Positions 32,469 through 57,666 of a stretch of DNA of 64,000 nucleotides are shown here, one piece after another. A program made the position numbers and the translations under genes. Numbering within the stretch: the first letter of the stretch is position 1; every line of letters starts with the position of its first letter. The stretch lies in the IMG/VR virus record IMGVR_UViG_3300042502_001233, positions 248,001 to 312,000 of that record. One strand, written 5' to 3'. The notes under the pieces were generated by a model. The model was not told the origin of the DNA and searched no databases. It saw only the letters and a program-made list of their open reading frames with translations.

Positions 32469-33275
32469 TTAAATCGGTAAATTAATTTTACTTAAAATTT
32501 GATTTGATACGTGTGTATATATTTCAGTGGTTTTTACGTTAGCATGACCTAAACATTTTTGTATAATTCTTAAATCAGTACCAGCTTCCAACAGAGCGGT
32601 GGCTTGTGAATGTCTTAACAAATGAAAATGATATTCTTCACCAATATATTTTTTAACTATTTCATTACAACTTCTATGAGAATATTGTAAATTGTTACCT
32701 TGACCATTAAACAAATATTCTTTAGGTTTATACACTTTAAAATATTCACGCAAAAGATTTAAAACAATTGGTGACAAGGGAACGAATCTATCTTTTCTTC
32801 CTTTACTGTTTTTAATGTGTATTAACATTCGTTTACTATCAATATCTTCAATTTTTAAATTACACAATTCAGAAACTCGCATTCCTGTTGAATACGCTAA
32901 TGTAAGTATAGCTTTGTGTTTAATGTTTTCGATTTTAGATAATTTTTCGAGCAGAAACTCCTTTTCGATTATTTTTGGTAATTTTTTCTCTTTTCGTGGT
33001 CTTTTAAACGAAACCTTATCGTATTTTCTTTCTAATCCGTATTTATATAAAAACCTTATTGCGTTTATAACTTGATTTTGTTGTGAAACAGACGTGAATT
33101 TGTAATTATCTAAGTAATTCTGAAAATCTTTAGAATTTAAGTGAGCGACTTGTTTGTCCCCTACATTTTTAATGAAAGAGATAATGTGATACATATAATT
33201 TTCTTTTGTTCGTGGCGAGTAGTTAAGATATATAAACTTTTGTTCACAAATCTTTATAATTTTTTCGTTTAACAT
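32469..33275 (-). CDS. Integron-integrase-like tyrosine recombinase (short form, no IntI insertion)
   Basis: SQQNQVINAIRFLY, RPRKEKKLP, GMRVSE, KGRKDR, HLLRHS, LGH, TTEIYTHV; likely start MLNEK at 33275. Confidence 0.9.
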   Translation of the reverse strand: MLNEKIIKICEQKFIYLNYSPRTKENYMYHIISFIKNVGDKQVAHLNSKDFQNYLDNYKFTSVSQQNQVINAIRFLYKYGLERKYDKVSFKRPRKEKKLPKIIEKEFLLEKLSKIENIKHKAILTLAYSTGMRVSELCNLKIEDIDSKRMLIHIKNSKGRKDRFVPLSPIVLNLLREYFKVYKPKEYLFNGQGNNLQYSHRSCNEIVKKYIGEEYHFHLLRHSQATALLEAGTDLRIIQKCLGHANVKTTEIYTHVSNQILSKINLPI

Positions 33276-33294
33276 ACTGATTTTATTAATGGTT

Positions 33295-33325
33295 TGAGAT
33301 GTTTTTACATATATTATAGTTAGCA
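33295..33325 (+). other. Candidate attI-like site (crossover G|TT at 33319)
   Basis: First cassette starts GTTAGCACC just upstream of the integrase, with no attC hairpin to its left. Confidence 0.65.
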
Positions 33326-33331
33326 CCAATA

Positions 33332-33808
33332 CTACGATAGTGCTTCGATTTCAAGTATCATATCTTTATTTTTTACAGAAAAAACAAATTCACCTACATA
33401 TCCTGCGTCTTCTCCGTAAATAGCATCGCAACTATTCAATTCAGTTAGAAATTTGCTTGATAAGTCTTCTCCTAAAACATTTGAAAATAAATCAAGTTCT
33501 TCTTTGTAATTTGATGTAATTGCTATATCACCGATTACGAATAATCCTTGTTGTCTATTAAATCTATTTCCGTTTTTACCAGTTTTTTCACTATAAATTT
33601 TATTCCATTTATCTAATTTTAGAATATTATAATTTGTTGTATCTATGGTTATTTTATAACAATTATCACCGAATTTTTTAGCGTAATCTAAGTTAACCGC
33701 TAAATAATCAGCACCACTTCGGTTTTTATCATAAACACCATCAACACATTTATACACTGTGGTTTTACCAAAGTTTTTAACTTTATCTATTAATTCTCTT
33801 ATTTCCAT
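33332..33808 (-). CDS. Cassette 1 gene; possible ART-like fold
   Basis: VYK...YLAVNLDYAKKFG; the fold call is weak. Confidence 0.6.
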   Translation of the reverse strand: MEIRELIDKVKNFGKTTVYKCVDGVYDKNRSGADYLAVNLDYAKKFGDNCYKITIDTTNYNILKLDKWNKIYSEKTGKNGNRFNRQQGLFVIGDIAITSNYKEELDLFSNVLGEDLSSKFLTELNSCDAIYGEDAGYVGEFVFSVKNKDMILEIEALS

Positions 33809-33862
33809 ATTTTTACTTATAAATATTCCAAATTTAAAATTCTACCAAATAAACCGTAATGG

Positions 33863-33957
33863 TGCTAACAAGGTGTATAAGAAAGTTTGCTATCAAGTTC
33901 AGTGGTAAATTTGAAAGTTCCTATAAGCAAACCTTCTCATACACCCAATCGTTATAT
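33863..33957 (+). repeat. attC-like site 1 (family A)
   Basis: TAAC 33866, arms GGTGTATAAGAAAGTTTGCT / AGCAAACCTTCTCATACACC, GTT 33951. Confidence 0.9.
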
Positions 33958-33972
33958 TCAATATCAAAAATT

Positions 33973-34329
33973 TTATGGTTTTATAGAAATTGAATTAAAC
34001 CACTTGAGTTCAGATGTTAATTCATTCAACTTACCTTCGTATTTAACTATTTTATTTTCGTTCAATGGTTCGGATATTTTATAACCACCATCAATCTTTA
34101 TATGTTTAGTTTCTTTTTGATTTAGTTTGGAATGAATATTACCAATCCTCTCATTTATTGATTTAACATTCATATCAATAACCCATCTAACATCATCTAT
34201 ATTATGTTTAGATAATTCTTCAACAACTCCATTCCATTTAGTAATGAGTTTTGTTTCTAAATCAAAAACTAAACCACGTTGTCCGCCAAGACAACCATCT
34301 TCTTCAAACCATTCAATTTCTTTTTTCAT
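33973..34329 (-). CDS. Cassette 2 gene
   Basis: ORF fills the cassette. Confidence 0.75.
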   Translation of the reverse strand: MKKEIEWFEEDGCLGGQRGLVFDLETKLITKWNGVVEELSKHNIDDVRWVIDMNVKSINERIGNIHSKLNQKETKHIKIDGGYKISEPLNENKIVKYEGKLNELTSELKWFNSISIKP

Positions 34330-34352
34330 ATGTATAAATTTTTTGATACTAA

Positions 34353-34406
34353 ATATAACAAATGATAAACAACATTAAAACGATTGTTTATCATCAGACG
34401 TTAGTA
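34353..34406 (+). repeat. attC-like site 2 (short family B)
   Basis: TAAC 34356, ATGATAAACAA / TTGTTTATCAT, GTT 34400. Confidence 0.85.
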
Positions 34407-34435
34407 GCAAATTGTAAAACTTGCCACCGCACCAA

Positions 34436-34714
34436 TTACATATATTGTTCCTTTTTGAAATTTATGAATGATAGTTTTTCGTCAACACATTTCTCACAAA
34501 TTTGTGCAGTCCATTTCTGCGTATCTTTTCCGCTATGGTAGCCCCAATGTGTTTCTAACTTCATAAATTCAAAACTGTAATATGGCTCACCGTTATCAAC
34601 TCTAACATTATTATCTATTTCACCTTCATCAACCTTACAACTTTTGCCACAGCAATCACAAATCACATCTGTAATAACTTCGGTCTTTTTGTTTTGTGTT
34701 TCCTTTGTTTCCAT
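34436..34714 (-). CDS. Cassette 3 gene, Zn-finger (CDCC...CEKC)
   Basis: ORF track. Confidence 0.75.
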   Translation of the reverse strand: METKETQNKKTEVITDVICDCCGKSCKVDEGEIDNNVRVDNGEPYYSFEFMKLETHWGYHSGKDTQKWTAQICEKCVDEKLSFINFKKEQYM

Positions 34715-34765
34715 TTATATTTTAGTTTATCGTTTTCCTACGCTCAAAAAAGTTTTACAATCAGC

Positions 34766-34820
34766 TACTAACAGCGTATAAAAAACATTAAAACGATTTT
34801 TTATACGCAAACCGTTATAA
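34766..34820 (+). repeat. attC-like site 3 (family B)
   Basis: TAAC 34769, GCGTATAAAAAA / TTTTTTATACGC, same acattaaaacga loop as site 2, GTT 34814. Confidence 0.85.
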
Positions 34821-34826
34821 CCAATA

Positions 34827-36731
34827 CTACTTTTCGTCTCCGTAAATTGGCATATATCTTTCATCGTAACCAACGATTTTTCTATGTTTATTATCATCAA
34901 TGTATTTATCATCAGCATTTTTTTGTTGGTCAAACTCTTCTTTAAGTTTGATTAACCCATCTCTTAGTTCTTTTGGCAAAAGAGATTCATCAGCTAAAAT
35001 TTCTTGTCTGATTTGTTCGTGTTTTTGGTGAATATTATTCCCATGTTCAATTATTTTTTCTATTTTATTCTCCATATTTTTAATTTTTAAAACATTCAAT
35101 TAGTTTAATACTTGGTAAATTCCAAACATCAATTATTTTATAATCTGAACCATCAGTATTTGTTAGTATGATATTATTCGGTTCAATTTTGAAATCTGTT
35201 CTTATACAAATACCAAGGTTTTTATCGTTTTCTCTAATAAGAAAAAATGGTTCAAAACTTTTACTAACATCAGCTTTGTATCTTTTATAATTATAAACAT
35301 CATGTTCACCTATAATATGAAAATCTTTAAAATTATCAAATATAACACAAATCTGTCCAGATGCTATAACAACATCTAAATCAAATTCTTTCATATAATA
35401 CCTAACGAAACTATTTAAACTTTCGTTATGTTCAAGTTGTGTAATATCATTATTTGGTTTTTTATAATCCCAAACATAATCTTTTACTTTATCAACATTT
35501 TTTTCATATTCCTTAAATGTTTTATATTCAAGTCTTTTTAATATTTCTTCCATATTTTAATATTTTAACAATAAATCATTCAATTCTATATCTAAACCAA
35601 ATAATGATTTTTCAATCACTTCACGTATTGTTAATGTTGGTTCATCTTTCATAATATTTAAACAAATTAACATTAGCTCATTTGTTCTATCTGTTTGGTT
35701 GGTGAATTTAATCACATAATCAATATATTTTAAATCATCAAAATGTTCCATATTTTTAATTTTCATATATTTTAAAAATTTCTTCAATTTTAACTATTTT
35801 ATTACCAAATAAAACTTTATCACCAATAAACTCGTATTTAGAAATAAGATAATTTTCAAACCAATGTAAAAAAATAACAATATCTTGGTATGAATATTCA
35901 CTTTCAATATCCATAAATATTTTATGGTCTAAAAACATCCCAATAGGGTAGTAAACCCAATCATCTGGATTTCTACTATCTACTTCATCCACTAATTCCC
36001 TACAAAAAGATAAATCATTAAAATGATGATTATATACGTGAGGCTCATACCCACCAATTTTATTTTTATATGGTAAATTTAAACTCTTAATAAAATAAGG
36101 TTTTTTTTCATAATTGACATTAGATTCATATAATGAATTACGAAGTTTTAGTTTAAGTTTTTCTAACTTTTTATCGTAGTTGGTATTTGTCTTCGCAACA
36201 AATCCTTTATTTTTAAATTCTTCAACTTCTTCATCTGAACAATCTTCAACCCATTTAATATCAATATCAATAAGTTCTGTTTCTACTGAAGTGTCATCGT
36301 TTATTTTAGTTTCTCCACGATAGGCAAATGGTATTAAACCATTTTCTGGTATTTTAAAATTTTTTTCCATATTTTATAAATTTATTTTATTGATTAATTG
36401 GATATATGAGTTAATAGGTAATTTTTCAGATAAATATTTTTTTATTATTTCTGAATTATTGTATTTTTTTGGGTTATCCAAAAACTCAAAAAGAATTTCT
36501 TTAAATAAATCTTTTTCAATATCACTTTCACTACAATAACTCATAAAATCACCAAATGATGGTATGAAAGTATTAATATCAGTCATTATTATTTATATGT
36601 TTTAGTATTTCTTTAATAACATCTACCCATTGATTGGTTTCAGTTATATGTTTAATTTTGTTTTCTGAAAAAGAAGATACTTGTCTAAGACCTTCTTTAT
36701 CTGTAATAATAATCTCCATTTTATTTTCCAT
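34827..36731 (-). CDS. Cassette 4: operon of six ORFs (34827, 35080, 35557, 35756, 36374 and a short ORF near 36586-36731)
   Basis: ORF track; own TATATTTG promoter box near 36746. Confidence 0.7.
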
Positions 36732-36800
36732 AATTTATTTTTTTTACAAATATACTAATTATTATTCAATTAATCAAGTTTTATCTTAAAATCACCGTAC

Positions 36801-36824
36801 TGGTTATAACAAATGTTATAACCA
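36801..36824 (+). repeat. Collapsed attC-like site 4
   Basis: tggttaTAAC-aaat-GTTataacca; no hairpin body. Confidence 0.7.
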
Positions 36825-36827
36825 ATA

Positions 36828-37849
36828 CTACTTTTCGTCTTCGTAAATCGGCATAAAGTTTTCAGAATAACCAACTATTTTCCTATGTTTATTCTCTTCG
36901 ATATATTTATCATTAGCTATTTTTTGTTGGTCAAATTTTTCTTTAAGTTTTATTAACTCATCCTTTAGTTCTTTTGGTAAAAGAGACTCATCAGCTAAAA
37001 TTTCTTGTCTGATTTGTTCATGTTTTTGGTGAATACTATTTCCATATTCAATTATTTTTTTTATGTTATTCATGATTAAACGTATATTTTATATTTATTT
37101 TCTTTATAAGTTATTAATAATAATTCTCTAGGTATAACAGATAATGTATCTAACCAATTATGTCTTTCAGTTTCTGTTTTCTCCAAATATATATCTTCTC
37201 TAATGGTGTTTAAGCAGTCCGTTCTTATTATTGTGTTGAAATTGTCTGATAAAACCAATCTATTTTCTAATTCTAAATTAGTTTTAATAACGTTTAAACC
37301 AATACTTTGATATTGGTTCGTGGTTTTTGTGATTTCATTTATAAAATCACACATTTTTAAGTGCTTTAAAGATGGTTCATTTTTAGTAACTAAACTAAAA
37401 AATTCAAAATCAGTATCTTTATTCAACCAATCATACTTTTTAATCGAAATTATTAGTTTTAATTTATCACGATATTCATCAACTTCAGTTTTTGAAAGTT
37501 CTCCGACCATAACCCACGTTAAATCTTCAATAAATGTTTCATTACCATCAATGGGTGTTAACTTAGCTTTCGGAACGCCAATCATTGTTTCTTGTTCATA
37601 TTTATTACCACATTCTATTAACGATTTATTTGGATAACTTGTTTTTGTATCAGTTTTATAAATAAAATTAACTTTCCTTGGAATAAAATATTCTTCCAAT
37701 TCTTTAAATATTTCTGGATACCTTTCTTTTAAATATGAGTCACATTTTACGTAGTCAATACCATATCTAAAAGTCGTTTTATGTAATGCTAAAGAATAAC
37801 TTTTAATCACATCAATCAAATTATTTATATTATATATGCTTTTTTTCAT
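36828..37849 (-). CDS. Cassette 5: two ORFs (36828, paralog of 34827; 37076)
   Basis: ORF track; ends nearly identical to cassette 4. Confidence 0.75.
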
Positions 37850-37921
37850 AATTTATTTTTTTTACAAATATACTAATAATTATTCAATTAGTCAAGTTTT
37901 ATCTTAAATTCACCGTACTGG

Positions 37922-38015
37922 TTATAACAAGGTGTATAAGAAAGTTTGCTATTAAGTTTAGTTGTAATTTGAAAGTTCATCTAAGCAAACCTTCTCATAC
38001 ACCCAATCGTTATGT
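37922..38015 (+). repeat. attC-like site 5 (family A)
   Basis: TAAC 37925, GTT 38009. Confidence 0.9.
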
Positions 38016-38091
38016 GTAAGTGTGAGTTCCCTCTCCGAATTAACTTTTGTGTTAGAAAATTTTAGAAAAAAGAACCCACCGCACATATTTT

Positions 38092-39033
38092 TTATTTTTT
38101 TTCAGTTATTAAATTATTATCTAAAGCATAAAATAATTGTATAAAGTATCTTTTATCTTTTAATTTCACATCTCCAGTATAACTATCATATGTTCTACCG
38201 TTTGTCATTCTTATTTTCGATAATGGTTGAGTTCTTAATAATTGAATGTCTTTTTCATTCATATTAAAGTATGATTCACCATCACAGTTAAATTTTTTCC
38301 AAGATTTTTTAGTAATCTTTTCACCATTTTCAAAAAGAATAATAATCTCATCATTTTCATTACATCCACCAATACCTACCATTGTAGTAGTAATCATTGA
38401 AAATGATAGTTTATCAGAGTTTATGTGTGTTGATATTCTGAATCCAATTTTTCCAACATCGTTAGCACAGATAAAATCTCTACTTCCATATACATATGTT
38501 TCCCCACTCATAACATCAGTTTCCTTTACTACATAAACACTGTCTTTTGATGTTTGTCCAAAAGATACTATTGTCATTAAACACATCATTAGTGTCATCA
38601 TCATTACTTTTAAATTTTTCATTTTTATTTATTTTAAGTTAATTATTTTTTAATTTCTACAATCAATCATTACAGTTCCACCACCACAAATATACACATC
38701 ATTAACGTGAGTGTTATTTTTATAATGTTCTTTTAAATCACTTTTTAATGTCTCATATTCATTACCATTTACAACTTTTTCAATTCTAACATTAATTAAT
38801 CTACCAGTTGGCATTACTTTATATGAACCATCCTTTGTGTATTTTGTATATTCCTGACCACCTAACATCCCATAACTTTGGTATGTGGTTTGTAAAGATT
38901 CAACAAACTCATCAGTTATTTGATACAACTCTGTGTTTGGTTCTATAATGTTTTTCACTTTATCACCAACACCATTACAAGACATCATAAAAACAGCCAA
39001 TAATCCCATTAAAATTAATTTTACTTTTTTCAT
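38092..39033 (-). CDS. Cassette 6: secreted protein (38092) and lipoprotein (38650)
   Basis: Signal peptide ...VSFGQ; lipobox FMMSC; TACCTTTG box near 39096. Confidence 0.75.
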
Positions 39034-39202
39034 TTTATTTGTTTTTTTAATTTACCTACTCTAAATCAGTTTTCGGTTTCCCTGTTTTTGTTTTACAAAG
39101 GTAAGTATAATTTCTTAAATAAAAAAATATTTCCCCTTCTTTTTTTCTAAAATTTTCTTTTAGTGCTTCAATTGAAGTTCATCGCTTAATAATCACACCT
39201 AC

Positions 39203-39297
39203 ACATAACAAGGTGTATAAGAAAGTTTGCTGTAAAGTTTGGTGGTAAAATTGAAAGTTCGTCTAAGCAAACCTTCTCATACACCCAACCGTTAGCA
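39203..39297 (+). repeat. attC-like site 6 (family A)
   Basis: TAAC 39206, GTT 39291. Confidence 0.9.
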
Positions 39298-39303
39298 CCA
39301 ATA

Positions 39304-39732
39304 CTACGTCCATTGCGGAGAATCAGGCATTTCATATCCAAGTTCTTGTAATTTCAGGTATCCGAAAAAGTGATTTTTATTATATCCTGATATTTCGTCA
39401 TCTGAACTATATTCAGTAAACCAAACAGATTTATGGTGAAACTGCATTCTACACTTTGATATAGTAGTAAAATAACCATCACTTACGGTATCTTGGCTAA
39501 GTAGCTCTACATCAATTGAACAATCCCCATACTTTCTAAATGATTCATAAAAATCAAGCCCAAGTATTCCGTTTCTTGAAATTATAGTGTTAACTGTCAA
39601 AGGGTGTATTCTGTTAATAACTGAAATTACATCTTCGTCAGTAATATCAATTAGTCGTTTCAAAACCGTACTGGTGCTAACAGCACCTATACCCAATTGG
39701 GCAGTTTCGTTGTTTTTTGAAGTTTCTTCCAT
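39304..39732 (-). CDS. Cassette 7 gene (start inside attC7)
   Basis: N-terminal TAQLGIGAVS encoded by the attC arm. Confidence 0.75.
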   Translation of the reverse strand: MEETSKNNETAQLGIGAVSTSTVLKRLIDITDEDVISVINRIHPLTVNTIISRNGILGLDFYESFRKYGDCSIDVELLSQDTVSDGYFTTISKCRMQFHHKSVWFTEYSSDDEISGYNKNHFFGYLKLQELGYEMPDSPQWT

Positions 39733-39807
39733 TTTATTAAGTTTTATCTGTTATTGAAAATTTGTGCTATTTATTGCCCAACTGGGCATAGCTACAATCC
39801 GTTAGCA
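39675..39807 (+). repeat. attC-like site 7 (family C)
   Basis: TAAC 39678, CTATACCCAATTGGGCA / TGCCCAACTGGGCATAG, GTT 39801. Confidence 0.88.
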
Positions 39808-40095
39808 GTAATCAGGATGAACTGCTAAATAATGTAAGTAAATAGAATGAATTTTTGGCTTACCAATACAAGTTAATAAACTAACTTGTTCTGCATTAAT
39901 AAATTCTGCTATTGGAATTTTACCTGAAATATCAATTCGTAATATTTTAATTGGCTCTTTAGATTTATCAAAAGTGTTGTAAAAAATATTTTTTTTAATT
40001 AAATCTATTTCTTTTAAAAATAAATCCGAAAAGACTACTGCTAACACATTATTGTCGCAATTGGCGGTTTTGGTACTCTCTGAATGTTTTGTCAT
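39802..40095 (-). CDS. Cassette 8 gene (start inside attC8, stop at the crossover TTA)
   Basis: ORF track. Confidence 0.7.
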   Translation of the reverse strand: MTKHSESTKTANCDNNVLAVVFSDLFLKEIDLIKKNIFYNTFDKSKEPIKILRIDISGKIPIAEFINAEQVSLLTCIGKPKIHSIYLHYLAVHPDYC

Positions 40096-40172
40096 TACTT
40101 TTATTTTTAGTGATTAATCAATAGTTTGTTTTGTGTTTGTCGCCACCTGACGACAATAATCCAACGTTAAAT
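40039..40172 (+). repeat. attC-like site 8
   Basis: TAAC 40042, ATTATTGTCG / CGACAATAAT, GTT 40166. Confidence 0.85.
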
Positions 40173-40499
40173 GCAAGTTATCCCAAAATCACGTTTAAGA
40201 ATTTTGATACAATTTTCCTTATTAAGTGATGAAATATAAATGCAATTTTCTTTTTTAATAACTTTTTTATTTTTCTTTTTAAAATTACCATTAACAGCAT
40301 CGTTCCAATGAATCTCTTTTATTTCAAGCTCGAAAACGGCTAATTCAATAGTTCTTTTATTTAAATCAAACTCAAACAAAATGTGATTTTCGTGTGGTAT
40401 AATTCTTGAATCAAAAACTTTTTGAATTTCTGCTTGTTGCTGTTTAGTGATTTCAATTTTATCTTTTACTTTGTCTTTTTCAAAATCGGATAATCTCAT
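40167..40499 (-). CDS. Cassette 9 gene
   Basis: Stop at the crossover TTA. Confidence 0.75.
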   Translation of the reverse strand: MRLSDFEKDKVKDKIEITKQQQAEIQKVFDSRIIPHENHILFEFDLNKRTIELAVFELEIKEIHWNDAVNGNFKKKNKKVIKKENCIYISSLNKENCIKILKRDFGITCI

Positions 40500-40510
40500 A
40501 TTTAACCTGC

Positions 40511-40643
40511 ATTTAACAGCCGTTTGGCAAGATTAGTGCTTTAGGGCTTAATTTATAATTGTCTTGTATTTGTTATTTAAGTGATAAAATGATAGTTTTA
40601 CGCTTATTTATCACTAACCTCGCCAAGCGTGAAAACGTTAGCA
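40511..40643 (+). repeat. attC-like site 9
   Basis: TAAC 40514, TTGGCAAGATTAGTG / CACTAACCTCGCCAA, GTT 40637. Confidence 0.85.
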
Positions 40644-40982
40644 GTCATTGCTACCATACGTTTCCAAATCGAAAATTTCGCCAACTTCATTTCTATATTG
40701 AAATTTAAAATTGTCTGTTAAATTTCGTGTCAATGATGCACTTGAAAATACTTTTTTATTTTGAACACAACTTGCAATATCTTCAATCTTTGCTCTACCA
40801 AAATCGTAGCTATCACCGTGCAAAGTAAATATTGAATTATCTCTATCAAGTGTCCACCATCCACCGCCTTTAACCTTTGAAATATCGGTTGCAAGTTGTT
40901 TATGATAAGTACATTTTGCCACTATTAAGCAGTCGCCTTCTTGGTCATCTGTTTCGATTATAAATTTTGGGAATACATCCAT
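40638..40982 (-). CDS. Cassette 10 gene
   Basis: Likely start MDVFPK; GGGWW...G.S.DFG motif. Confidence 0.75.
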   Translation of the reverse strand: MDVFPKFIIETDDQEGDCLIVAKCTYHKQLATDISKVKGGGWWTLDRDNSIFTLHGDSYDFGRAKIEDIASCVQNKKVFSSASLTRNLTDNFKFQYRNEVGEIFDLETYGSNDC

Positions 40983-41021
40983 TTTTAAATTGAGTTTTGT
41001 TGTTAATAATCCGCAACGAAC

Positions 41022-41152
41022 TGCTAACATAGTGTTGCCAAAATGGGGGCAGACGTGCATTTAATGAACATTTGTACTGTATTCAGCAGTAGTGCTTTTA
41101 ATGGGCTTTTGTACTATAAATCCCCTACTTCGGCAACACTCAGCCGTTAGCA
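41022..41152 (+). repeat. attC-like site 10
   Basis: TAAC 41025, AGTGTTGCC / GGCAACACT, GTT 41146. Confidence 0.85.
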
Positions 41153-41162
41153 GTAATTATTG

Positions 41163-41387
41163 CTAACCGTTGTACATAGAAAAAGCCACTACATCGAAGT
41201 CGCCTAAAAAATCTTCTTTCTTTCTTGTCACGATAACTTGAACTTGTATTTCTTCATTTTCATTTATAACTAAACTTCCACAAGAGGTTGAAAAAGCATA
41301 GTTTTCTTGGTTTTCTGCTAATTTTTCAGCACATTCTTTGATTGCTCCTTTCAAATAAAGCGAATCGATTAATTTTTCTAAAGCCAT
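41163..41387 (-). CDS. Cassette 11 gene
   Basis: Likely start MALEK. Confidence 0.7.
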   Translation of the reverse strand: MALEKLIDSLYLKGAIKECAEKLAENQENYAFSTSCGSLVINENEEIQVQVIVTRKKEDFLGDFDVVAFSMYNG

Positions 41388-41408
41388 AATATTTGGTATT
41401 ATAACTAC

Positions 41409-41539
41409 TGCTAACATTCGCTATACAATAGTTGGGTTAATTTTTAAATTTAAAGTTCAGTTTGTACTTTTTTAATCAGTCTTTAATCGAAGTTTGGGTC
41501 TGTACCTTTCCCAACCATCGTATAGCTTTTCCGTTATAA
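41409..41539 (+). repeat. attC-like site 11
   Basis: TAAC 41412, GCTATACAATAGTTGGG / CCCAACCATCGTATAGC, GTT 41533. Confidence 0.85.
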
Positions 41540-41544
41540 GCCAT

Positions 41545-41793
41545 TTAAAGCGGAAACCTACTACGACAATATTCTCCATCATTTTTTTCGTAAAAACTTC
41601 TTGCATCTTCACGAGTTCCTACAAAAACACATCTATCCTCTTGCATAATATAAACACATTCTCTATTCCATAAAGCAAGTGGTATTTTAAACCATTTCGC
41701 ACCATCTTCAATATCATCGTGTACATGAAGAGAAAAACGGCTTATAACAGCGGTTTTGTCGCATTGTGGCACTTGGTCTTTTTCTGTATTCAT
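41545..41793 (-). CDS. Cassette 12 gene (start inside attC12)
   Basis: MNTEKDQVPQCDKTAVISR. Confidence 0.7.
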   Translation of the reverse strand: MNTEKDQVPQCDKTAVISRFSLHVHDDIEDGAKWFKIPLALWNRECVYIMQEDRCVFVGTREDARSFYEKNDGEYCRSRFPL

Positions 41794-41877
41794 AGTTTTT
41801 AATTTAATTATTGTTTTATTTTTGTTAAGTTTGGTCTTTAATCGCCACAACGACGACAAAGCCACAGGACGTTAGTA
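41742..41877 (+). repeat. attC-like site 12
   Basis: TAAC 41745, GTT 41871. Confidence 0.85.
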
Positions 41878-41882
41878 GCCAT

Positions 41883-42086
41883 TTAAGAAAGTGCTTTTTT
41901 CAACGCTTTCAATATTCTTTGGCACTCTTTCTTTTCTTCACCAACATTATTCCAAACAAGAAACTCATAAGTACTTATCATTCCTTCTGCTGTATCTCGT
42001 CTTATTTTAACATTAACAAAACGGCTACTAACAGCACCTATACCCAATTGGGTAGTTTCTTGGTTATTCAAATTTTCGTGTTCCAT
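41883..42086 (-). CDS. Cassette 13 gene (start inside attC13)
   Basis: MEHENLNNQETTQLGIGAVSSR. Confidence 0.7.
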   Translation of the reverse strand: MEHENLNNQETTQLGIGAVSSRFVNVKIRRDTAEGMISTYEFLVWNNVGEEKKECQRILKALKKALS

Positions 42087-42158
42087 ATTTACTTTATTTT
42101 AAGTTGATAATTTTGTGTTTCAAATCGCCCAACTGGGCATAGCTGCAAAACGTTAGCC
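42026..42158 (+). repeat. attC-like site 13 (family C)
   Basis: TAAC 42029, arms nearly identical to attC7, GTT 42152. Confidence 0.88.
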
Positions 42159-42164
42159 GTAATT

Positions 42165-42431
42165 CTAATCACGCCAAGTGATGTGCATTGCTTCTAACTT
42201 ATCCCCAAGTATCGGACTGCCATAGTTTTCAAACTTCATTTTAATTGAAGGATAAACTTCCAATCCATTTGGACATTGTGTTTTTAATGGTAGCTTTCGT
42301 TTATCTTCTGAAATTCGTAATGCTTCTAAAATGAAGTCATTCAAACTTTTATCTTCGGAAGAAGAACTACGGCTAACAACGTATTGCTGAACATTGCCAG
42401 CTTCATCGGTAATTTGAACTTTGTATTCCAT
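42165..42431 (-). CDS. Cassette 14 gene (start inside attC14)
   Basis: MEYKVQITDEAGNVQQYVVSRS. Confidence 0.7.
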   Translation of the reverse strand: MEYKVQITDEAGNVQQYVVSRSSSSEDKSLNDFILEALRISEDKRKLPLKTQCPNGLEVYPSIKMKFENYGSPILGDKLEAMHITWRD

Positions 42432-42504
42432 ATCAACCTTTTATTTTAAATTAAACATTTGTGCTTCTAAATTGGCAACGTCAGCAATACGCAAAACGTT
42501 ATAC
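42371..42504 (+). repeat. attC-like site 14
   Basis: TAAC 42374, CGTATTGCTGA / TCAGCAATACG, GTT 42498. Confidence 0.85.
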
Positions 42505-42520
42505 ACAATATTTTTACCAA

Positions 42521-43020
42521 TCACACCGCATAAATCCATAATTGAGTTATTTGTTCGTCAGTAATATTTTCTGGTGTTATATCATATTCACCATATTTTT
42601 TCATATATGTTATATATTCTAATTTCATATCTTTGGATAACGAGTTCCAAAAATTTAATGATTTTTGTCTGTCTTCCATTTCTTCATCATTCATAACTCT
42701 AATTATTTTATGTTCTAATAATTGTGGTGCAATAATACCTTGATTATATAACCAACTCGCTAACTTAAATTGTAGTCTTACTAATAGTGTTTTCATTTCT
42801 TATTTATTATTTATTAAAATTACTCGAAAATAGGTAAAAAAGTTTCGTTATCATAACCAATAATCTTTTTACCGTTTTTTATATTATCGTTTATCCATTT
42901 ATCTTCTTCAGACCACTTTGTTTCAAATTCTGTTTTTAAATTATTCATTCGGTCTTTTAAATCTTGTGGGATATTATCATTATTTAATATCTCATTTCTT
43001 AATTGTTCGTGTTTTTCCAT
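42521..43020 (-). CDS. Cassette 15: two ORFs (42521; 42820, paralog of 34827/36828)
   Basis: ORF track; TATATTTG box near 43035. Confidence 0.7.
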
Positions 43021-43085
43021 AATTCTATTTTTTACAAATATACTAATTTATTTCTAATTTATCAACCCTCCCACAAAAATACTGT

Positions 43086-43179
43086 GTATAACAAGGTGTA
43101 TAAGAAAGTTTGCTATCAGCATTTGTGGTAATTTTAAAGTTCATCTAAGCAAACCTTCTTATACACCCAACCGTTATAG
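43086..43179 (+). repeat. attC-like site 15 (family A)
   Basis: TAAC 43089, GTT 43173. Confidence 0.9.
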
Positions 43180-43208
43180 GAAATTTTATTTTTTTTCTCA
43201 CCGCACCG

Positions 43209-43511
43209 TTAGCATCTTGGAACACCTTCTGCTGGGTCATACCATCCGTGAATATTAAATTCGTGCTTTGGCGAAGGTTTTTTACCCCATTTAGCAACTG
43301 CTTCTTCTTCTGTTTTTGGAAACGGAAATTGATTATGAATAACATTTAGTTCTTGTTGGTGCTTTTCATCACCCATACTTGGGTCAATTTCGTGTTTAAA
43401 AACTAAATTAAGATGCTTCTTAATCATTGTCGTTTGTTCTTTGGTTATTGTTTCAGCGTTGCTTACTTCAAAAAAACCTTGTAGCCAATAGGCAAAATCT
43501 CTACTTGTCAT
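43209..43511 (-). CDS. Cassette 16 gene (MTSRDFAYWLQGFFE, a phage-type motif)
   Basis: F.YWLQG..E...IK.HL.LVF motif. Confidence 0.75.
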   Translation of the reverse strand: MTSRDFAYWLQGFFEVSNAETITKEQTTMIKKHLNLVFKHEIDPSMGDEKHQQELNVIHNQFPFPKTEEEAVAKWGKKPSPKHEFNIHGWYDPAEGVPRC

Positions 43512-43557
43512 ATTTTTAAATTTGTTTATTGCCAACCCACAAAAAAATAAAACTATC

Positions 43558-43653
43558 CTATAACACGGGTTTGACGTAATGCCACCAGATAGTTTAGGCT
43601 AAATTTAAAGTTCGTGCAAGGTGGCACTAACGCCAAGCCCGAAACCGTTATGA
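43558..43653 (+). repeat. attC-like site 16 (last)
   Basis: TAAC 43561, CGGGTTTGACGTAATGCCAC / GTGGCACTAACGCCAAGCCCG, GTT 43647. Confidence 0.85.
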
Positions 43654-44118
43654 AAACCATTCTGGTAATTCTCTACCTTTCCATTTGGCTAATTTCCTTT
43701 TCTCTGTTCTATAATATTCTCTGTAGCTATCCACAGCATCACCAACCTTGCATTCGTCTGGCATAGCCAAAGCAAATGGTGTTATATCACTATTGTATTT
43801 CAATTTAGGTTTATGTATTAAACACCATTCAATTACCGCTTGTGACTTATGTCTTTTTTCGTAACGATATGTGTATTCTTTGCACAATTCAAGTCCCAAA
43901 TCACAAAGCCAAATGTAGTTTTCCATACATTCTCTGGCCCATATTGCACTTGGATGATTTTTATGGGATAACTTGTATGGTATATCATACCCAGATTCTA
44001 CTACGTGATGAACGCCACACAACAATTGTGCATATTCAACTATCATCTTGGTACAATGGCGATTTACATGGTATTTTGCACATTTTTTAACATCTAAATC
44101 TAAAACGAATATGTTCAT
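43648..44118 (-). CDS. Pyrimidine-dimer DNA glycosylase / endonuclease V family protein
   Basis: MNIF.LD...CA.YH...H..KM.VE.AQLL...H.NHP...W...EY..RY...H. Confidence 0.8.
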   Translation of the reverse strand: MNIFVLDLDVKKCAKYHVNRHCTKMIVEYAQLLCGVHHVVESGYDIPYKLSHKNHPSAIWARECMENYIWLCDLGLELCKEYTYRYEKRHKSQAVIEWCLIHKPKLKYNSDITPFALAMPDECKVGDAVDSYREYYRTEKRKLAKWKGRELPEWFS

Positions 44119-44168
44119 AATTTTAATTTTTATTATACAAAGATACTATTTTATTTTAAATTACAAAA

Positions 44169-45137
44169 TTAATATCTATATTTTTTAAAAATATTTTCAG
44201 AATTTTTTGTTAATTTCACAATACCAGATGAAATTAATTCAATTATTTTTTGTTTTGTAACATATGGTGATTCTATTTCAGTTATAATTGAATAATTTTC
44301 ACCAAAAATTTCTTTACCTTTTTGTATTTTTATCGGGTTTACACCGTATTCTAACAGACTAGTTGGTTTTATTTCATAAATGAAATCACCATCAGTGAAA
44401 TCTGGGAAATATGTTTTTATTTTATCTTTATAAAAATATTTAACAGCGTATTTTTTTATTTCACAACTAGTAAATATTTTATCACTATTATTAATTAAAA
44501 AAGATAATTCTAGTGAACTTCTAAAATAAAGATTGTTATACCAACCACTAACATGTTTAACATTATTTGATGTTGTTATGTATTTTTCTCTATCTAAATT
44601 TTCAGTATAGAACTTATTTAGAGATTCACTAATTTTATTTTTAGTCTCGTTATTATGTTTTAAAGTGTTATTTTTCCTTTTTGATTCAATAATATTTTTT
44701 TGCCACTCATTCGTTCTTTCAAGTTTAGAACCAGTTAATTTGTCAATAACTTTATTTTTTATTTCATCTACTTTCATTGGGTTATTAACACCATATTTTT
44801 GTAAATTAGAAATTTCCCAATTTTTTTGTTTAATTTTTTGGTTAGTGTTAGAAACCCTTTTATCAACCATATCTTTAGATTGAGTTTTACCTAACCAATA
44901 ATCTCTTTTAATTGTTTTGTTTTTGTTCCTACATTCAATAGAACAATTTTTTAAATAACCAACACCTACATTTCTGTATGTAGTTTCTTTACCACAAACA
45001 CAACATTCACCGTCACCTTTAATTTTTAAATATTTGTCATAGTATTCTCTACCATTTAGATTGTGTTTAAAATTAACATGTGTTGTTAAAGCTTTTAAGT
45101 TTTTGAATTCTTCATTACAAATTTTACAAGTTTCCAT
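44169..45137 (-). CDS. Homing endonuclease (C2H2 finger, NUMOD3-like repeats, TnsA-like PD-(D/E)XK)
   Basis: FRSSLE...YFPDF...YEIKP. Confidence 0.7.
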   Translation of the reverse strand: METCKICNEEFKNLKALTTHVNFKHNLNGREYYDKYLKIKGDGECCVCGKETTYRNVGVGYLKNCSIECRNKNKTIKRDYWLGKTQSKDMVDKRVSNTNQKIKQKNWEISNLQKYGVNNPMKVDEIKNKVIDKLTGSKLERTNEWQKNIIESKRKNNTLKHNNETKNKISESLNKFYTENLDREKYITTSNNVKHVSGWYNNLYFRSSLELSFLINNSDKIFTSCEIKKYAVKYFYKDKIKTYFPDFTDGDFIYEIKPTSLLEYGVNPIKIQKGKEIFGENYSIITEIESPYVTKQKIIELISSGIVKLTKNSENIFKKYRY

Positions 45138-45172
45138 ATCTTTTTATTTATAAATATACGGAACTTTGAAAA

Positions 45173-45259
45173 AGTTTCAAGTATCATCTTAACAACATGT
45201 TTATCATTGTGATATTGTGCACATTTTTTTGTGTTTGTGTCCAGTACAAATATATTCAT
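45173..45259 (-). pseudogene. Stranded 5' end of the glycosylase gene (MNIFVLDTNTKKCAQYHNDKHVVKMILET)
   Basis: Manual translation aligns to the N-terminus of 43648. Confidence 0.85.
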
Positions 45260-45311
45260 ATTGCAAATATATAAGTTATTTTTTTAACCATCAAAATTTT
45301 TATCTTAAAAA

Positions 45312-46472
45312 TTATTTTTCAGGGGTTTCTTCATTAACAACAGCCCAATATACACAACCAATCGATATAATCAATGTCATAATGTAAACAAACCATAATT
45401 GTCCAGAGGTTGGTTCAAATGACAAATAGTTGAAATCTTTGAACGATTTATAATGCCAATGTGAGTTTATAGCCTTCATATATATATTATAAAATGCTTT
45501 ATCATCTTTGACTGGTGCTTCCATTAAATCTTCTCTGATATCTATCAAAACACGTTTATTATCGCACCATGAAAATGGTTTAACCCATTCAATGTTACCC
45601 AAGTTGTCAAGCCCGATGCAAACAACTATTTCATTCTGATTACCACCATCCCAATAAGCTTCTTGTTGGAATGCTGTGCTGATATCTCTGTTCTTAAAGA
45701 ACAAAGTAAAAATTTTAACCTTATATTTACGACCATATGCTCCGTTGATATAATCTAACGTTTTAATAATTTTAAGTCTTGACCTAGAGTTAAAATCTTC
45801 TATACCTATGACACTAGATTGGTAATTATATTGTTGTAATTCAGGATACTCATACAATCCACTAGTCCTTGCTTTATCTTTTTCAATATTTGGATAGTTA
45901 AAGGCCGAATGGTTACTTTTAAGAATATTTGTGAACGATTTGGTATGTGTTGTGGTTATCGATGTATTGATGTCACGATTCCAGATAATACGGTACATAT
46001 CACCATCCTTACCACAAGAACCACGATAATTTATATCACGATTTAACTCAACAAATTTAGGCGTTTCTTTCCAAAGTTTGACCAAAGATAAATATTTGTC
46101 TCGACTTATTGATATTTCATCACCATCTGAGTCAATCATAACATAACGTTCTGAGTTATAGTCACAATAGGAACAGTCATAATAAACCGTGTGTGTTGTT
46201 CTATTTTTTCCAGAACCAGTACTATATGTGCGGCTACATGTTTTCTTTTTCCATGTTTCCCATGCTTCATAGTATCTAGCTTCTGTTACAATATAACCGT
46301 TGTATTCAACGTCTGAAAGGGTTACTGATTTCATAGTGTAATATGAAATCAATATAAACAATGCGCTACCAGCAACTGGGATAAGAATTTCCCACCAAAC
46401 AATTTTGTTTTTAAATAAAACCCACCCTATCACAGCGGCTAGGATGGGGATTATAAGTGCATACCAAATCAT
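45312..46472 (-). CDS. Membrane protein
   Basis: Two N-terminal and one C-terminal hydrophobic helices. Confidence 0.75.
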   Translation of the reverse strand: MIWYALIIPILAAVIGWVLFKNKIVWWEILIPVAGSALFILISYYTMKSVTLSDVEYNGYIVTEARYYEAWETWKKKTCSRTYSTGSGKNRTTHTVYYDCSYCDYNSERYVMIDSDGDEISISRDKYLSLVKLWKETPKFVELNRDINYRGSCGKDGDMYRIIWNRDINTSITTTHTKSFTNILKSNHSAFNYPNIEKDKARTSGLYEYPELQQYNYQSSVIGIEDFNSRSRLKIIKTLDYINGAYGRKYKVKIFTLFFKNRDISTAFQQEAYWDGGNQNEIVVCIGLDNLGNIEWVKPFSWCDNKRVLIDIREDLMEAPVKDDKAFYNIYMKAINSHWHYKSFKDFNYLSFEPTSGQLWFVYIMTLIISIGCVYWAVVNEETPEK

Positions 46473-57535: not shown

Positions 57536-57592
57536 TTTACTTCTTTCTAAATAAATATCTAGAAATTATAAAAAGTACAAAAAAGTTTAAGG

Positions 57593-57666
57593 TGGAAGTA
57601 ACGGGACTCGAACCCGTGTTCTCGCAACATCAGCCGCTTTATACTATCCTATTGTACTATACTCCC
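57593..57666 (-). tRNA. tRNA-like RNA with G3:U70 and A73, irregular anticodon loop (CTGATG)
   Basis: GGGAGTA/TACTTCC-A, D arm GTAC/GTAT, T arm ACGGG-TTCGAGT-CCCGT. Confidence 0.7.

Follow-up and report, generated by a model that had tools for sequence, protein, structure and literature searches.

Layout of the array and its recombinase

The window, by which we mean the whole 64,000-nt stretch of DNA that was analysed, belongs to a 362-kb lake-water phage and contains a chain of 16 cassettes, spanning 33319-43647, next to the gene of a Xer-like tyrosine recombinase (Table 1). The chain was defined by two conditions: the first 8-12 nt from each GTTA had to reappear downstream as a reverse complement, and the next GTTA had to follow within 170 nt of that reverse-complement copy. 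This rule joined 17 crossover boxes into 16 cassettes. Shuffled genomes, used as a control, yielded chains of no more than 3, and the other chains detected across the 362-kb genome were all without hairpin cores. Beyond 43647 there was no chain partner of 8 nt or longer, and the chain stops at cassette 16.

The cassettes have the form TTAxxxxx-body-xxxxxTAAC-hairpin core-G. Their ends are perfect, cassette-specific inverted repeats of 8-10 nt (GTTxxxxxx...xxxxxxAAC), and a hairpin core is present in each; the 9-nt ends of cassette 3 are GTTAGTAGC/GCTACTAAC, and cassettes 4 and 5 have identical ends. The left end of the array (33319), a double-stranded attI-like insertion site, is core-less; its GTTA crossover box is found 41 nt ahead of the ATG of the recombinase gene. 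At the right end (43558-43653) stands a complete hairpin. The last R' box is overlapped by the stop codon of the first backbone gene upstream of the array; since this gene is co-directional with the array, transcription from there would enter it.

Table 1. Features of the cassette array and its flanks, in window positions
Feature	Position	Strand	Details
Tyrosine recombinase, Xer-like	32469..33278	-	268 aa from ATG at 33278; Pfam Phage_integrase and SAM_4
attI-like insertion site	33290..33325	.	GTTA crossover box from 33319; no hairpin core on left
Crossover boxes 1-9	33319, 33951, 34400, 34814, 36815, 38009, 39291, 39801, 40166		
Crossover boxes 10-17	40637, 41146, 41533, 41871, 42152, 42498, 43173, 43647		
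Cassette 1	33320..33951	-	ORF 33332..33808 (158 aa); attC1 33863-33957; 10-nt inverted-repeat ends; core fold
Cassette 1 box	33829	-	TAnnTTTG, 21 nt from ORF start
Cassette 2	33952..34400	-	ORF 33973..34329 (118 aa); short attC2 34353-34406; 8-nt ends; 11-bp perfect stem
Cassette 3	34401..34814	-	ORF 34436..34714 (92 aa); short attC3 34766-34820; core fold
Cassette 4	34815..36815	-	six ORFs; 10-nt ends; truncated attC4 36804-36821
Cassette 4 ORFs	36579..36731, 36374..36586, 35756..36370, 35557..35787, 35080..35553, 34827..35099	-	
Cassette 4 box	36747	-	TAnnTTTG, promoter-like, 16 nt from first ORF
Cassette 5	36816..38009	-	ORFs 37076..37849 (257 aa), 36828..37073 (81 aa); attC5 37922-38015; box 37865
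Cassette 6	38010..39291	-	ORFs 38650..39033, 38092..38622; attC6 39203-39297; 10-nt ends; box 39096
Cassette 7	39292..39801	-	ORF 39304..39732 (142 aa), start within long attC7 39675-39807; 10-nt ends
Cassette 8	39802..40166	-	ORF 39802..40095, cassette-filling; attC8 40039-40172
Cassette 9	40167..40637	-	ORF 40167..40499 (110 aa, phrog_15043), stop in R' box; attC9 40511-40643
Cassette 10	40638..41146	-	ORF 40638..41060 (140 aa), stop in R' box, start in attC10 41022-41152
Cassette 11	41147..41533	-	ORF 41163..41417 (84 aa); attC11 41409-41539; weak phrog_12601 match
Cassette 12	41534..41871	-	ORF 41545..41865 (106 aa, GTG start as listed); attC12 41742-41877
Cassette 13	41872..42152	-	ORF 41883..42086 (67 aa), start within attC13 42026-42158
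Cassette 14	42153..42498	-	ORF 42165..42431 (88 aa), start within attC14 42371-42504
Cassette 15	42499..43173	-	ORFs 42820..43020 (66 aa), 42521..42796 (91 aa); attC15 43086-43179; box 43035
Cassette 16 (distal, last)	43174..43647	-	ORF 43209..43535 (108 aa); complete attC16 43558-43653
First backbone gene upstream of array	43648..44118	-	phrog_624 DNA-binding protein, only N-terminal half of profile

The best matches of the recombinase were XerA/XerC-like, with XerA_Arch at the top of NCBIfam (186 bits, cut-off 220) and scores below the XerC (155/335) and XerD (151/330) cut-offs. A XerC/XerD/XerA dimer resolvase was rejected on these sub-cut-off scores and because the enzyme is encoded by a phage gene beside a 16-site array and not beside a single dif. 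TIGR02249 was matched with 158 bits (cut-off 265) in two pieces only (model 5-178 and 257-312), and 34 recombinase residues stand opposite 81 aa of VchIntIA (2a3v). In these two comparisons, with the TIGR02249 profile and with VchIntIA, the IntI-specific insertion was absent and the integron criterion of an integron integrase was not met; the missing insertion and the sub-cut-off score rule out identity as IntI. Relatives of the recombinase number thousands in metagenomes and are annotated as XerD only. Its action on these sites is inferred from sequence alone, without an assay.

Hairpin cores and their strand signature

Fifteen cores share the fold TAAC + 1-2 nt / stem / loop / stem / 5-6 nt + GTTA, and one (36804-36821) is truncated. 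The 15 complete sites, 54-136 nt in length, have stems unrelated in sequence and a single common architecture; lake metagenomes cover the attC2 core type to a depth of 300-500x, and the attC7 and attC13 cores (families D7 and D11) are homologous. The integron criterion of attC-type imperfect palindromes (R''-L''...L'-R') with AAC/GTT boxes was met in the window, with cassette-specific R-box complementarity reaching 8-10 nt. In integrons, strand choice is set by extrahelical bases close to L'', on the arm without the AAC triplet (PMC5027507, from which the definition is taken). This criterion was not met, the core stems having mismatches only and no bulged bases. In the phage cores the two arms differ in length in the R-L spacer, and the extra bases share an arm with the AAC triplet of the recombined strand. 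This asymmetry measured +2 to +4 in each of the 13 window cores that the scan could score, and within each related array its sign was the same in nearly all cores.

The minus-strand fold was the more stable one in 15/15 complete cores, by 3.9 kcal/mol on average, and contained 48 G:T pairs versus 9 in the plus-strand fold. Integron bottom strands show a parallel signature of stability and G:T pairs on the recombined strand (PMC5027507). It remains possible that the folding and G:T bias reflects mRNA hairpins or G-richness of the coding strand instead of selection on ssDNA.

Polarity of the array

The boxes alone cannot give the polarity of the array, because RYYYAAC/GTTRRRY reads alike on both strands. 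We therefore asked which gene each core moves with and at which end new cassettes are added. Twenty-five related phage loci have kept the left half-site (..ATATATTATA ahead of GTTA); directly after GTTA their sequences diverge, even where the left flanks are identical. Locus L035 has two copies of a 394-nt cassette that are 100% identical. One of them abuts the attI-equivalent point, has the orientation of the internal copy and carries a 67-aa membrane-protein ORF on the reverse strand. From its sequence we read this duplicate as a recent re-insertion at attI. Among cassettes common to unrelated contigs (94-100% identity, with breaks at GTTA), the body was shared with its right core in 7/7 core-carrying units and with its left core in none of the seven; in L114/L127 body and right core are 99% identical over 495 nt, and six more independent pairs are alike. 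Cassettes C13 and C14 were found in differing neighbourhoods. Two integron criteria, independent mobility of cassettes across contexts and an attI site adjoining the recombinase gene as their entry point, were thus met.

Four independent tests agreed with the first-pass annotation on the polarity of the recombinase-attI-cassette-attC order, placed by it on the plus strand: the core-less left end and complete right-end hairpin, the conserved site beside the recombinase, the core-to-gene linkage of shared cassettes together with the L035 copy, and the minus-strand stability and G:T signature. A true attI at the 43.6-kb end, which would have refuted it, was looked for and contradicted: cassettes enter at the recombinase end. 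Its labels 'intI' and 'classical' were overstated, given the missing IntI insertion and the hairpins without extrahelical bases.

Two bodies were shared without either core (L060/L092, 100%; cassette 15 of the window and L023, 97% with another core in L023), and therefore exchange precisely at TAA|C occurs too, an event outside the predictions of a strictly one-strand model. Neither a clean excision nor a circle junction turned up in the assembled contigs of DNA runs. At the cores, which occur in many copies in the community, assembly graphs are interrupted.

Orientation and reality of the cassette genes

All 24 credible ORFs of the array are on the minus strand, as is the longest ORF of each of the 16 cassettes; plus-strand ORFs do not exceed 105 aa and are nested in longer minus-strand ORFs. 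The minus-strand ORFs are real genes, as shown by relatives, PHROG matches and an excess of changes at the third codon position. Protein-level relatives occur in other loci at 42-98% identity; those of the cassette 4 ORFs are in L063, L065 and L070 (70-98% aa identity). Three ORFs had PHROG matches, among them those of cassette 9 (phrog_15043, E = 2e-26, residues 9-107) and cassette 16 (unknown function). The 81-aa ORF of cassette 5 is a paralogue of 34827..35099 in cassette 4, and differences between two paralogous ORF copies were distributed 5/8/18 over the codon positions.

Gene starts adjoin or sit inside the hairpin core, and stops lie at most ~25 nt from the opposite cassette end. The ORF of cassette 7 encloses R'' and shares an attC-encoded N-terminus with that of cassette 13 (family D11), and the stop of the cassette 8 ORF is the TAA of the R' box. 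Both ORFs of cassette 6 have signal-peptide-like N-termini. Each gene is on the strand bearing the 5'-AAC-3' crossover triplet and starts at the core, so the core is upstream of the gene instead of downstream. The minus strand, which bears the AAC crossover triplet, is therefore also the mRNA sense strand for every gene. All cassette genes are directed at attI and the recombinase and are co-directional with the phage backbone, which is nearly all minus-strand in keeping with a genome-wide minus-strand gene bias. The integron criterion of top-strand genes with a Pc at attI was not met, 16/16 window cassettes being reversed.

Cassettes 4, 5, 6 and 15, and cassette 1 as well, have minus-strand TAnnTTTG boxes at distances of 15-63 nt ahead of ORF starts; the spacers between start and R'' (~520 nt together) contained 6 boxes versus ~0.7 expected at the window-wide rate. 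Cassette 6 has the order TAnnTTTG box, DUF805b-like 5' leader (39053-39086), ATG. Eleven cassettes have no recognisable promoter box. The first-pass annotation had claimed that every credible cassette ORF is on the minus strand, toward attI and co-directional with integrase and phage, and that cassettes 4, 5, 6 and 15 have their own boxes; both claims held, with cassette 1 added. Its statements that a Pc at attI could not express the genes, which point toward attI, and that the attC bottom strand is also the mRNA-sense strand were supported. Expression through cassette promoters or read-through remains inferred only, from promoter-like boxes and the co-directional context.

Related arrays in other phages

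The same geometry was observed in about 60 further arrays, in dozens of other uncultured phages. Across the family (about 66 arrays), 287 cassettes were reversed and 28 were forward (287/315 of those with an ORF reversed); another 30 had no ORF. The recombinase was always at the attI end, on the strand opposite to the reading orientation of the array, and embedding was co-directional in 12-13 of 14 loci with full flanks. Family-wide, the R' box supplies the stop codon of 59 ORFs through its TAA, and an ORF start lies within 67 of 113 long cores. One attC word was present in 99 viral stretches. The core type was absent from isolate genomes, and its carriers are phages; the integron-like system is apparently phage-specific. 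In the literature searched, no description of a phage platform with reversed cassettes was found.

Proposed mechanism and alternative explanations

We consider it likely that the locus is an integron-like gene-capture platform on a large phage, with cassettes built the other way round. In the proposed mechanism, the minus strand of a core would fold as ssDNA into an R arm (9-10 bp), a central region and an L stem, with the six-nucleotide central region (C + 5-nt spacer) on one arm only. The recombinase would exchange the minus strand only, and replication would resolve the junction, as in integrons and CTX-phage/XerCD; the basis for this is indirect (minus-strand stability, G:T pairs and the one-arm central region). 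Because no attI promoter can serve the genes, we propose that they are transcribed from promoters within cassettes 1, 4, 5, 6 and 15 as well as by read-through out of the phage genes upstream, with the recombinase gene as the last gene of that putative transcription unit.

The array might be an ordinary integron misread from the wrong end, with its true site at 43.6 kb and the recombinase at the far end. In its favour, a hairpin with extra unpaired bases on its 5' arm comes after each ORF on the sense strand, many ORFs stop in a TAAC box as in classical cassettes, and the palindromic R boxes make box order alone indecisive. This reading is very unlikely and already contradicted: a full hairpin is present at 43.6 kb and no core at 33.3 kb, 25 loci have the conserved junction with its variable partner beside the recombinase, where the L035 duplicate was also inserted, the core is on the start-codon side in all seven core-carrying shared units, and the crossover point would split seven window ORFs. 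We regard as equally improbable that no recombination platform exists and that the hairpins are intergenic RNA or terminators of a phage operon, beside a phage integrase or dimer resolvase. The hairpins are indeed on the mRNA sense strand and more stable there, no cassette junction was caught in metagenome assemblies, and the recombinase relatives are annotated only as XerD. However, cassette-specific 8-10 nt inverted ends chain 16 units, identical units in unrelated contigs break exactly at GTTA, L035 has its duplicate at attI, the array always abuts the recombinase 5' end, and assembly graphs break at cores that are high-copy in the community.

Insertion might also not be strand-selective, either orientation entering and only co-directional cassettes surviving selection. 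The almost wholly minus-strand backbone, the ~9% of family cassettes with a forward longest ORF and the occasional swapping of cores at the R'' box speak for this. We nevertheless consider it unlikely, since entry of the other strand would flip the spacer asymmetry, which is uniform in the 13 scorable window cores, and the gene-to-core arrangement is fixed within the mobile unit. The fixed asymmetry and arrangement imply that orientation is set when a cassette is made and kept by selective insertion.

A bolder reading, towards which we lean only slightly when its parts are taken jointly, is that the arrays are a separate gene-capture lineage, probably of Bacteroidota phages, with a Xer-like enzyme, attC-first modules and a role as a freshwater exchange route. 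A recombinase without the IntI domain would read hairpins via the arm-specific six-nucleotide central region; the recombination site would also serve as the gene's 5' end, supplying its promoter region, leader or even first codons; and genes would be added at the downstream end of the phage transcription unit, just before the recombinase gene. If true, the system would either have reinvented the integron convergently or be related to the integron's ancestor, and would be a main accessory-gene exchange route of large freshwater phages.

Comparison with known systems

Like integrons (IntI/attI/attC; class 1 mobile, Vibrio chromosomal), the phage system has a tyrosine recombinase gene beside a conserved attI, with transcription leading away from that site, an array of small gene cassettes, most of them uncharacterised, imperfect-palindrome sites with RYYYAAC/GTTRRRY boxes, crossover at or beside G|TT, a unit of body plus core distal to attI, cassette copies re-inserted at attI, and a recombined strand that is more stable and G:T-richer (PMC5027507). 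Unlike in integrons, the recombinase lacks the IntI-specific insertion; the cores are without extrahelical bases and have spacers of 1-2 vs 5-6 nt, with the extras on the AAC-triplet arm; the genes are on the recombined strand with attC upstream, which makes Pc-type logic impossible; in the shared direction of transcription the recombinase gene follows the cassettes; and the system is phage-carried, with a core type absent from isolate genomes. By the integron design rule, the strand opposite the genes is recombined, so that promoterless cassettes are correctly oriented behind Pc. The working-looking phage platform systematically breaks this strand rule and has neither the protein domain nor the extrahelical bases to which its enforcement is attributed. 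Phage arrays are thus a natural test of the strand-choice determinant, spacer geometry vs extrahelical bases, and imply cassette capture without need for Pc and a large pool of exchangeable unknown-function genes circulating among uncultured phages. Integron finders that require IntI would at best call such arrays orphan attC clusters.

In inverted-integrase integrons (e.g. Treponema denticola) the recombinase and cassette genes are also on the same strand. There the integrase gene is turned and the cassettes keep gene-then-attC, read away from attI, whereas the phage recombinase has the classical position and direction and the genes within the cassettes are reversed. Vibrio chromosomal integrons contain inverted toxin-antitoxin cassettes with their own promoter, independent of Pc (PMC13108822), but these are a minority in a conventional array, whereas the reversed and partly self-promoted arrangement is the rule across the phage array and its family. 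Phage-borne attC sites and cassette arrays were described by Qi et al. 2023 (PMC9892861) with the canonical models of IntegronFinder/HattCI and IntI1 tests; a term search of that paper found no Bacteroidota or jumbo phages, and matches to 'orientation' and 'inverted' concern other matters. The present family differs from those arrays in its own recombinase type and site architecture.

The CTX-phage integrates by XerCD at dif1 via a folded single-stranded attP. The enzyme is Xer-type without the IntI insertion, the hairpin mimics a two-arm site, the central region is improperly paired, exchange is limited to one strand pair, and replication completes the reaction. By analogy, this is the model we propose for the phage-array sites. 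The CTX system differs in that host enzymes integrate a whole genome into a host site, whereas here a phage enzyme would shuffle numerous small cassettes at an attI of its own.

Cassette boundaries and hairpin cores

On reading the sequence we found that the perfect reverse complement of the 9 nt from each GTTA box precedes the next hairpin, not the adjacent one. This chain rule joined 17 boxes, from 33319 to 43647, and so delimited 16 cassettes with inverted ends of 8–10 nt; in shuffled genomes the chain length never exceeded 3. An initial scan demanding TAAC:GTTA pairing in the minimum-free-energy fold was too strict, returning 2 sites only, and the chain rule was used instead. Further chains in the genome (92–105 kb and 325–334 kb of the record) had no hairpins and were rejected as chance matches.

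A single architecture was common to 15 cores of 54–136 nt with unrelated stem sequences: TAAC, 1–2 unpaired nt, stem, loop, stem, 5–6 unpaired nt and GTTA. At attC4, the core site of cassette 4, the hairpin is lost and TAAC-AAAT-GTTA is left; the site resembles a short-type core whose hairpin was lost between two G residues. The ends of cassettes 4 and 5 are identical, and the two cassettes show 88% identity over the first 257 nt, 86% over the last 118 nt and a different middle. Near the left ends of some cassettes the plus strand carries the motif CCACCGCAC or its variant CTCACCGCACC, each close to the 3' end of a minus-strand ORF, which the variant slightly overlaps; the exact 9-mer of CCACCGCAC is absent elsewhere in the genome. 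Rfam held no family for the sites, its sole match being a sub-threshold DUF805b-like stretch.

Features of the array and its surroundings (window positions)
Feature	Position	Strand	Remark
Recombinase gene	32469..33278	-	tyrosine recombinase
CCACCGCAC motif	34424, 38076	+	
CTCACCGCACC variant	43199	+	
attC4	36804-36821		hairpin lost
Genes of the 66–90 aa protein family	34827..35099, 36828..37073, 42820..43020	-	paralogues in three cassettes
257-aa ORF	37076..37849	-	
Cassette 6 genes	38092..38622, 38650..39033	-	signal-peptide or lipoprotein-like N-termini
DUF805b-like stretch	39053-39086	-	29.3 bits vs gathering score 35.6, E = 6e-5
5' arms of homologous long cores	39675-39732, 42026-42086		
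phrog_624 DNA-binding gene	43648..44118		backbone, directly upstream of array; only first half of profile matched
Two homing/HNH endonuclease-like genes	44169..45137, 46472..47605		backbone, upstream of array
tRNA-like gene	57591-57666	-	two-base anticodon undetermined (ARAGORN)

Polarity of the array and the inferred recombined strand

Since RYYYAAC and GTTRRRY are mutual reverse complements, the chain rule holds on both strands and any array looks 'classical' from either side. Polarity is decided by two questions: which core travels with a gene, and at which end cassettes enter. In the window, there is no hairpin to the left of the box at 33319, which is 41 nt away from the recombinase start codon, and the distal end of the array is a complete hairpin. 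We compared 33 loci carrying relatives of the recombinase (57–85% identity), in most of which the array adjoins the 5' end of the recombinase gene. Alignment of 25 loci revealed a conserved stretch ending ..TATATATAATA-GTTA, after which the sequence varies even where the left flanks are identical (L107/L108; L117/L118/L121).

The boundaries of shared units were informative in the same respect. Two related viral loci, L114 and L127, whose recombinases are 71% and 60% identical to that of the window, have in common a unit of 495 nt (99% identity) that starts at GTTA and continues through the cassette body, the R'' box (the TAAC at the body–core junction) and the core to the next GTTA. Body and right-hand core are likewise shared by six more independent pairs and the body alone by two; no pair shared a left core and body. 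The array of locus L035 reads attI followed by cassettes C15, C16–C20, C15, C21 and C22. The two copies of C15 run for exactly 394 nt, GTTA to core-GTTA, with 100% identity. The copy that directly adjoins attI is oriented like the internal one, and its reverse-strand gene encodes a 67-aa membrane protein with two helices.

As regards the strand, if plus-strand crossover takes place at G|TT, the minus-strand hairpin carries at its 5' end the 5'-AAC-3' triplet, which is the one cleaved by integron integrases (as defined in PMC5027507). Minus-strand hairpins were the more stable at 15 out of 15 sites (mean difference 3.9 kcal/mol) and contained 48 G:T pairs vs 9 in the plus-strand hairpins; a bias of like kind has been reported for the bottom strands of integrons (2.1 kcal/mol; 1.24 vs 0.39 G:T) (PMC5027507).

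Two features would favour the opposite polarity, with attI at 43.6 kb: on the plus strand the extra unpaired bases occupy the 3' arm, which differs from canonical top strands, and many ORFs stop in a TAAC box, a frequent trait of classical cassette genes. We rejected this polarity, given that the array lacks a core at the recombinase end and closes with a full site at the distal end, that the conserved insertion site lies next to the recombinase, and that the boundaries of shared units and the L035 duplicate both speak against it. The stability and G:T bias could alternatively have arisen from RNA folding or from a G-rich coding strand, which remains possible; the boundary evidence for polarity is independent of the folding bias. 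Since array ends, attI conservation, shared-unit boundaries and the L035 duplicate agree, the geometry holds: read along the plus strand, each cassette has the form TTA..-body-..TAAC-core-G, attI lies at the left and the genes run from right to left. The first-pass annotation had claimed that the cassette genes in 33319–43649 are inverted relative to classical integron geometry, and had named an attI at the 43.6-kb end as what would refute it. The observation was confirmed, with all credible ORFs on the minus strand and the insertion site at the recombinase end, and the interpretation was supported. Its further inference, that the attC bottom strand is also the mRNA-sense strand, is supported by the AAC position, the stability and the G:T pairs; use of that strand is inferred, without a recombination assay.

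The cassette genes

All 24 of the 24 credible ORFs of the array lie on the minus strand. These are real genes, because several have protein relatives in other phage contigs (42–98% identity), three match PHROG families (of unknown function only), and, read in the minus frame, most differences between two paralogous copies fall on third codon positions. The cassette proteins matched no Pfam family at cut-off (three sub-threshold matches only) and nothing in PADLOC. Seven window ORFs start inside their own attC. Two otherwise unrelated ORFs, of 142 and 67 aa, have their first ~19 residues in common (N-terminus ME..ET.QLGIGAVS), encoded by the 5' arms of the homologous long cores attC7 and attC13; the recombination site therefore supplies both the initiation codon and the opening residues of each protein.

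The small protein family of 66–90 aa is also present in L006, L023, L046 and L078 (42–61% identity), and its member in cassette 15 comes first in a unit of two genes similar in size to a toxin-antitoxin pair. The two cassette 6 proteins might be envelope proteins produced during infection. As a lead only, the 257-aa ORF gave an Atlas language-model feature match of 0.89 to Prim-Pol / archaeo-eukaryotic primase clusters of phages.

Expression of the cassettes

Transcription into the array from a promoter at attI would run antisense to all the cassette genes. TAnnTTTG boxes were found 15–63 nt upstream of the first ORF in cassettes 1, 4, 5, 6 and 15 and in none of the other eleven; scans for sigma-70 promoters and terminators gave results at chance level, terminator-like sites not exceeding it. 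The stop of the phrog_624 gene falls inside the last R' box (GTTA), the last cassette ORF is followed after 54 nt by the recombinase gene, and in 12–13 of 14 related loci the flanking genes on both sides are co-directional with cassettes and recombinase. Because boxes occur in some cassettes, the upstream genes are co-directional, no terminators rise above chance and an attI promoter would be antisense, expression probably proceeds by read-through together with cassette promoters, an inference made without transcript data. The recombinase would then be the final gene of the transcription unit. Three earlier claims can be judged here: boxes in cassettes 4, 5, 6 and 15 held (cassette 1 has one too), the inability of a Pc promoter at attI to express the cassettes held by geometry, and expression from cassette promoters or read-through from the distal end is supported as likely, by inference only. 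In cassette 6 the DUF805b-like stretch follows the TAnnTTTG box at 39096 and precedes the ATG (39033) of the lipoprotein-like gene, and may be a 5' leader element inside that cassette.

Spread of the reversed design and a probable second exchange point

A 24-nt word taken from the 95-nt core type was found in 99 stretches of viral contigs; among metagenome bins it occurred in only 13 short contigs with inconsistent taxonomic labels, and it was present in no isolate genome or GenBank phage record. In ~66 arrays oriented by spacer asymmetry, the longest ORF of each cassette was reversed in 287 cassettes, forward in 28 and absent in 30. The reversed ORFs fill their cassettes, the stop codon being the TAA of the R' box in 59 and lying ≤30 nt from that box in 192; with long cores the ORF starts inside the core in 67 of 113.

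The assembled contigs of the lake DNA runs break at cores, which are high-copy in the community. Joints in these contigs had short sides and undetermined intervening sequence, and were not counted as excision events. Summed contig depth in runs X2–X5 was 300–500x for the short ATTAAAACG-loop core (34200–34399), 35–118x for the 95-nt core (33800–33999) and ~6x for cassette bodies. Many genomes in the same lakes thus share both core types.

The body of cassette 15 (42498–43094) is shared with L023, with a different core. One cassette body occurs with three different right-hand cores (L027, L060, L065, L083, L092, L142), and in L060 and L092 the bodies are 100% identical and the cores differ on both sides. 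Since two bodies are shared without cores, a second exchange point probably lies exactly at TAA|C of the R'' box.

The phage and its host

The virus record (362,018 bp, judged complete, ~30% G+C) occurs in lake-water metagenomes and bears nearly all its genes on the minus strand; the window covers its bases 248001–312000. Replication direction could not be separated from coding-strand skew, and leading or lagging placement of the recombined strand is left unclaimed. The stretch 43648–47605 is rich in mobile nucleases. The closest integrases from cultured phages are those of Cellulophaga and Polaribacter phages (37–40% identity). The promoter-like boxes, being of TAnnTTTG type, make a Bacteroidota host likely, not shown. 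Neither the array nor the core type was found in GenBank phages, and an inspected Cellulophaga record had no annotated array upstream of the integrase.

The recombinase and comparison with known systems

The recombinase scored below every curated cut-off, the best score being XerA-like, and the integron-integrase model matched it in two pieces only (positions 5–178 and 257–312). When it is compared with VchIntIA (2a3v), 34 of its residues stand opposite 81: the insertion specific to IntI is absent, and the enzyme is not an IntI. Its metagenomic relatives number >5000 (~266 aa) and are named only XerD or tyrosine recombinase. No extrahelical bases were found in the stems of the sites, whose asymmetry resides in the spacer, 5–6 nt on the AAC-triplet arm vs 1–2 nt on the other. 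On the minus strand the layout is an R arm of 9–10 bp, a central region of six nucleotides (C and the 5-nt spacer) and the L stem. A Xer site has the same layout, but in the window cores it is present on one strand only. Strand choice would be set by spacing and not by extrahelical bases, which is inferred and not assayed. In CTX-phage integration by XerCD the second strand exchange is blocked, and by analogy the same spacing may block it here.

IntegronFinder surveys found integrons to be rare in Bacteroidetes (PMC9024848). A term search of a paper on phage integrons (PMC9892861) returned nothing on Bacteroidota or jumbo phages, and the full-text literature searched, which excluded subscription literature, held no description of this family. 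The main new facts are the reversed design throughout the family and the Xer-type recombinase. The window system follows the same logic as integrons: a recombinase and an attI are present, and cassettes are bounded by hairpins and re-inserted at attI. Three defining features are lacking: the IntI domain, the extrahelical bases, and genes oriented for expression from Pc. Because all three are missing we do not file it as a member of the integrons; it is an integron-like system.
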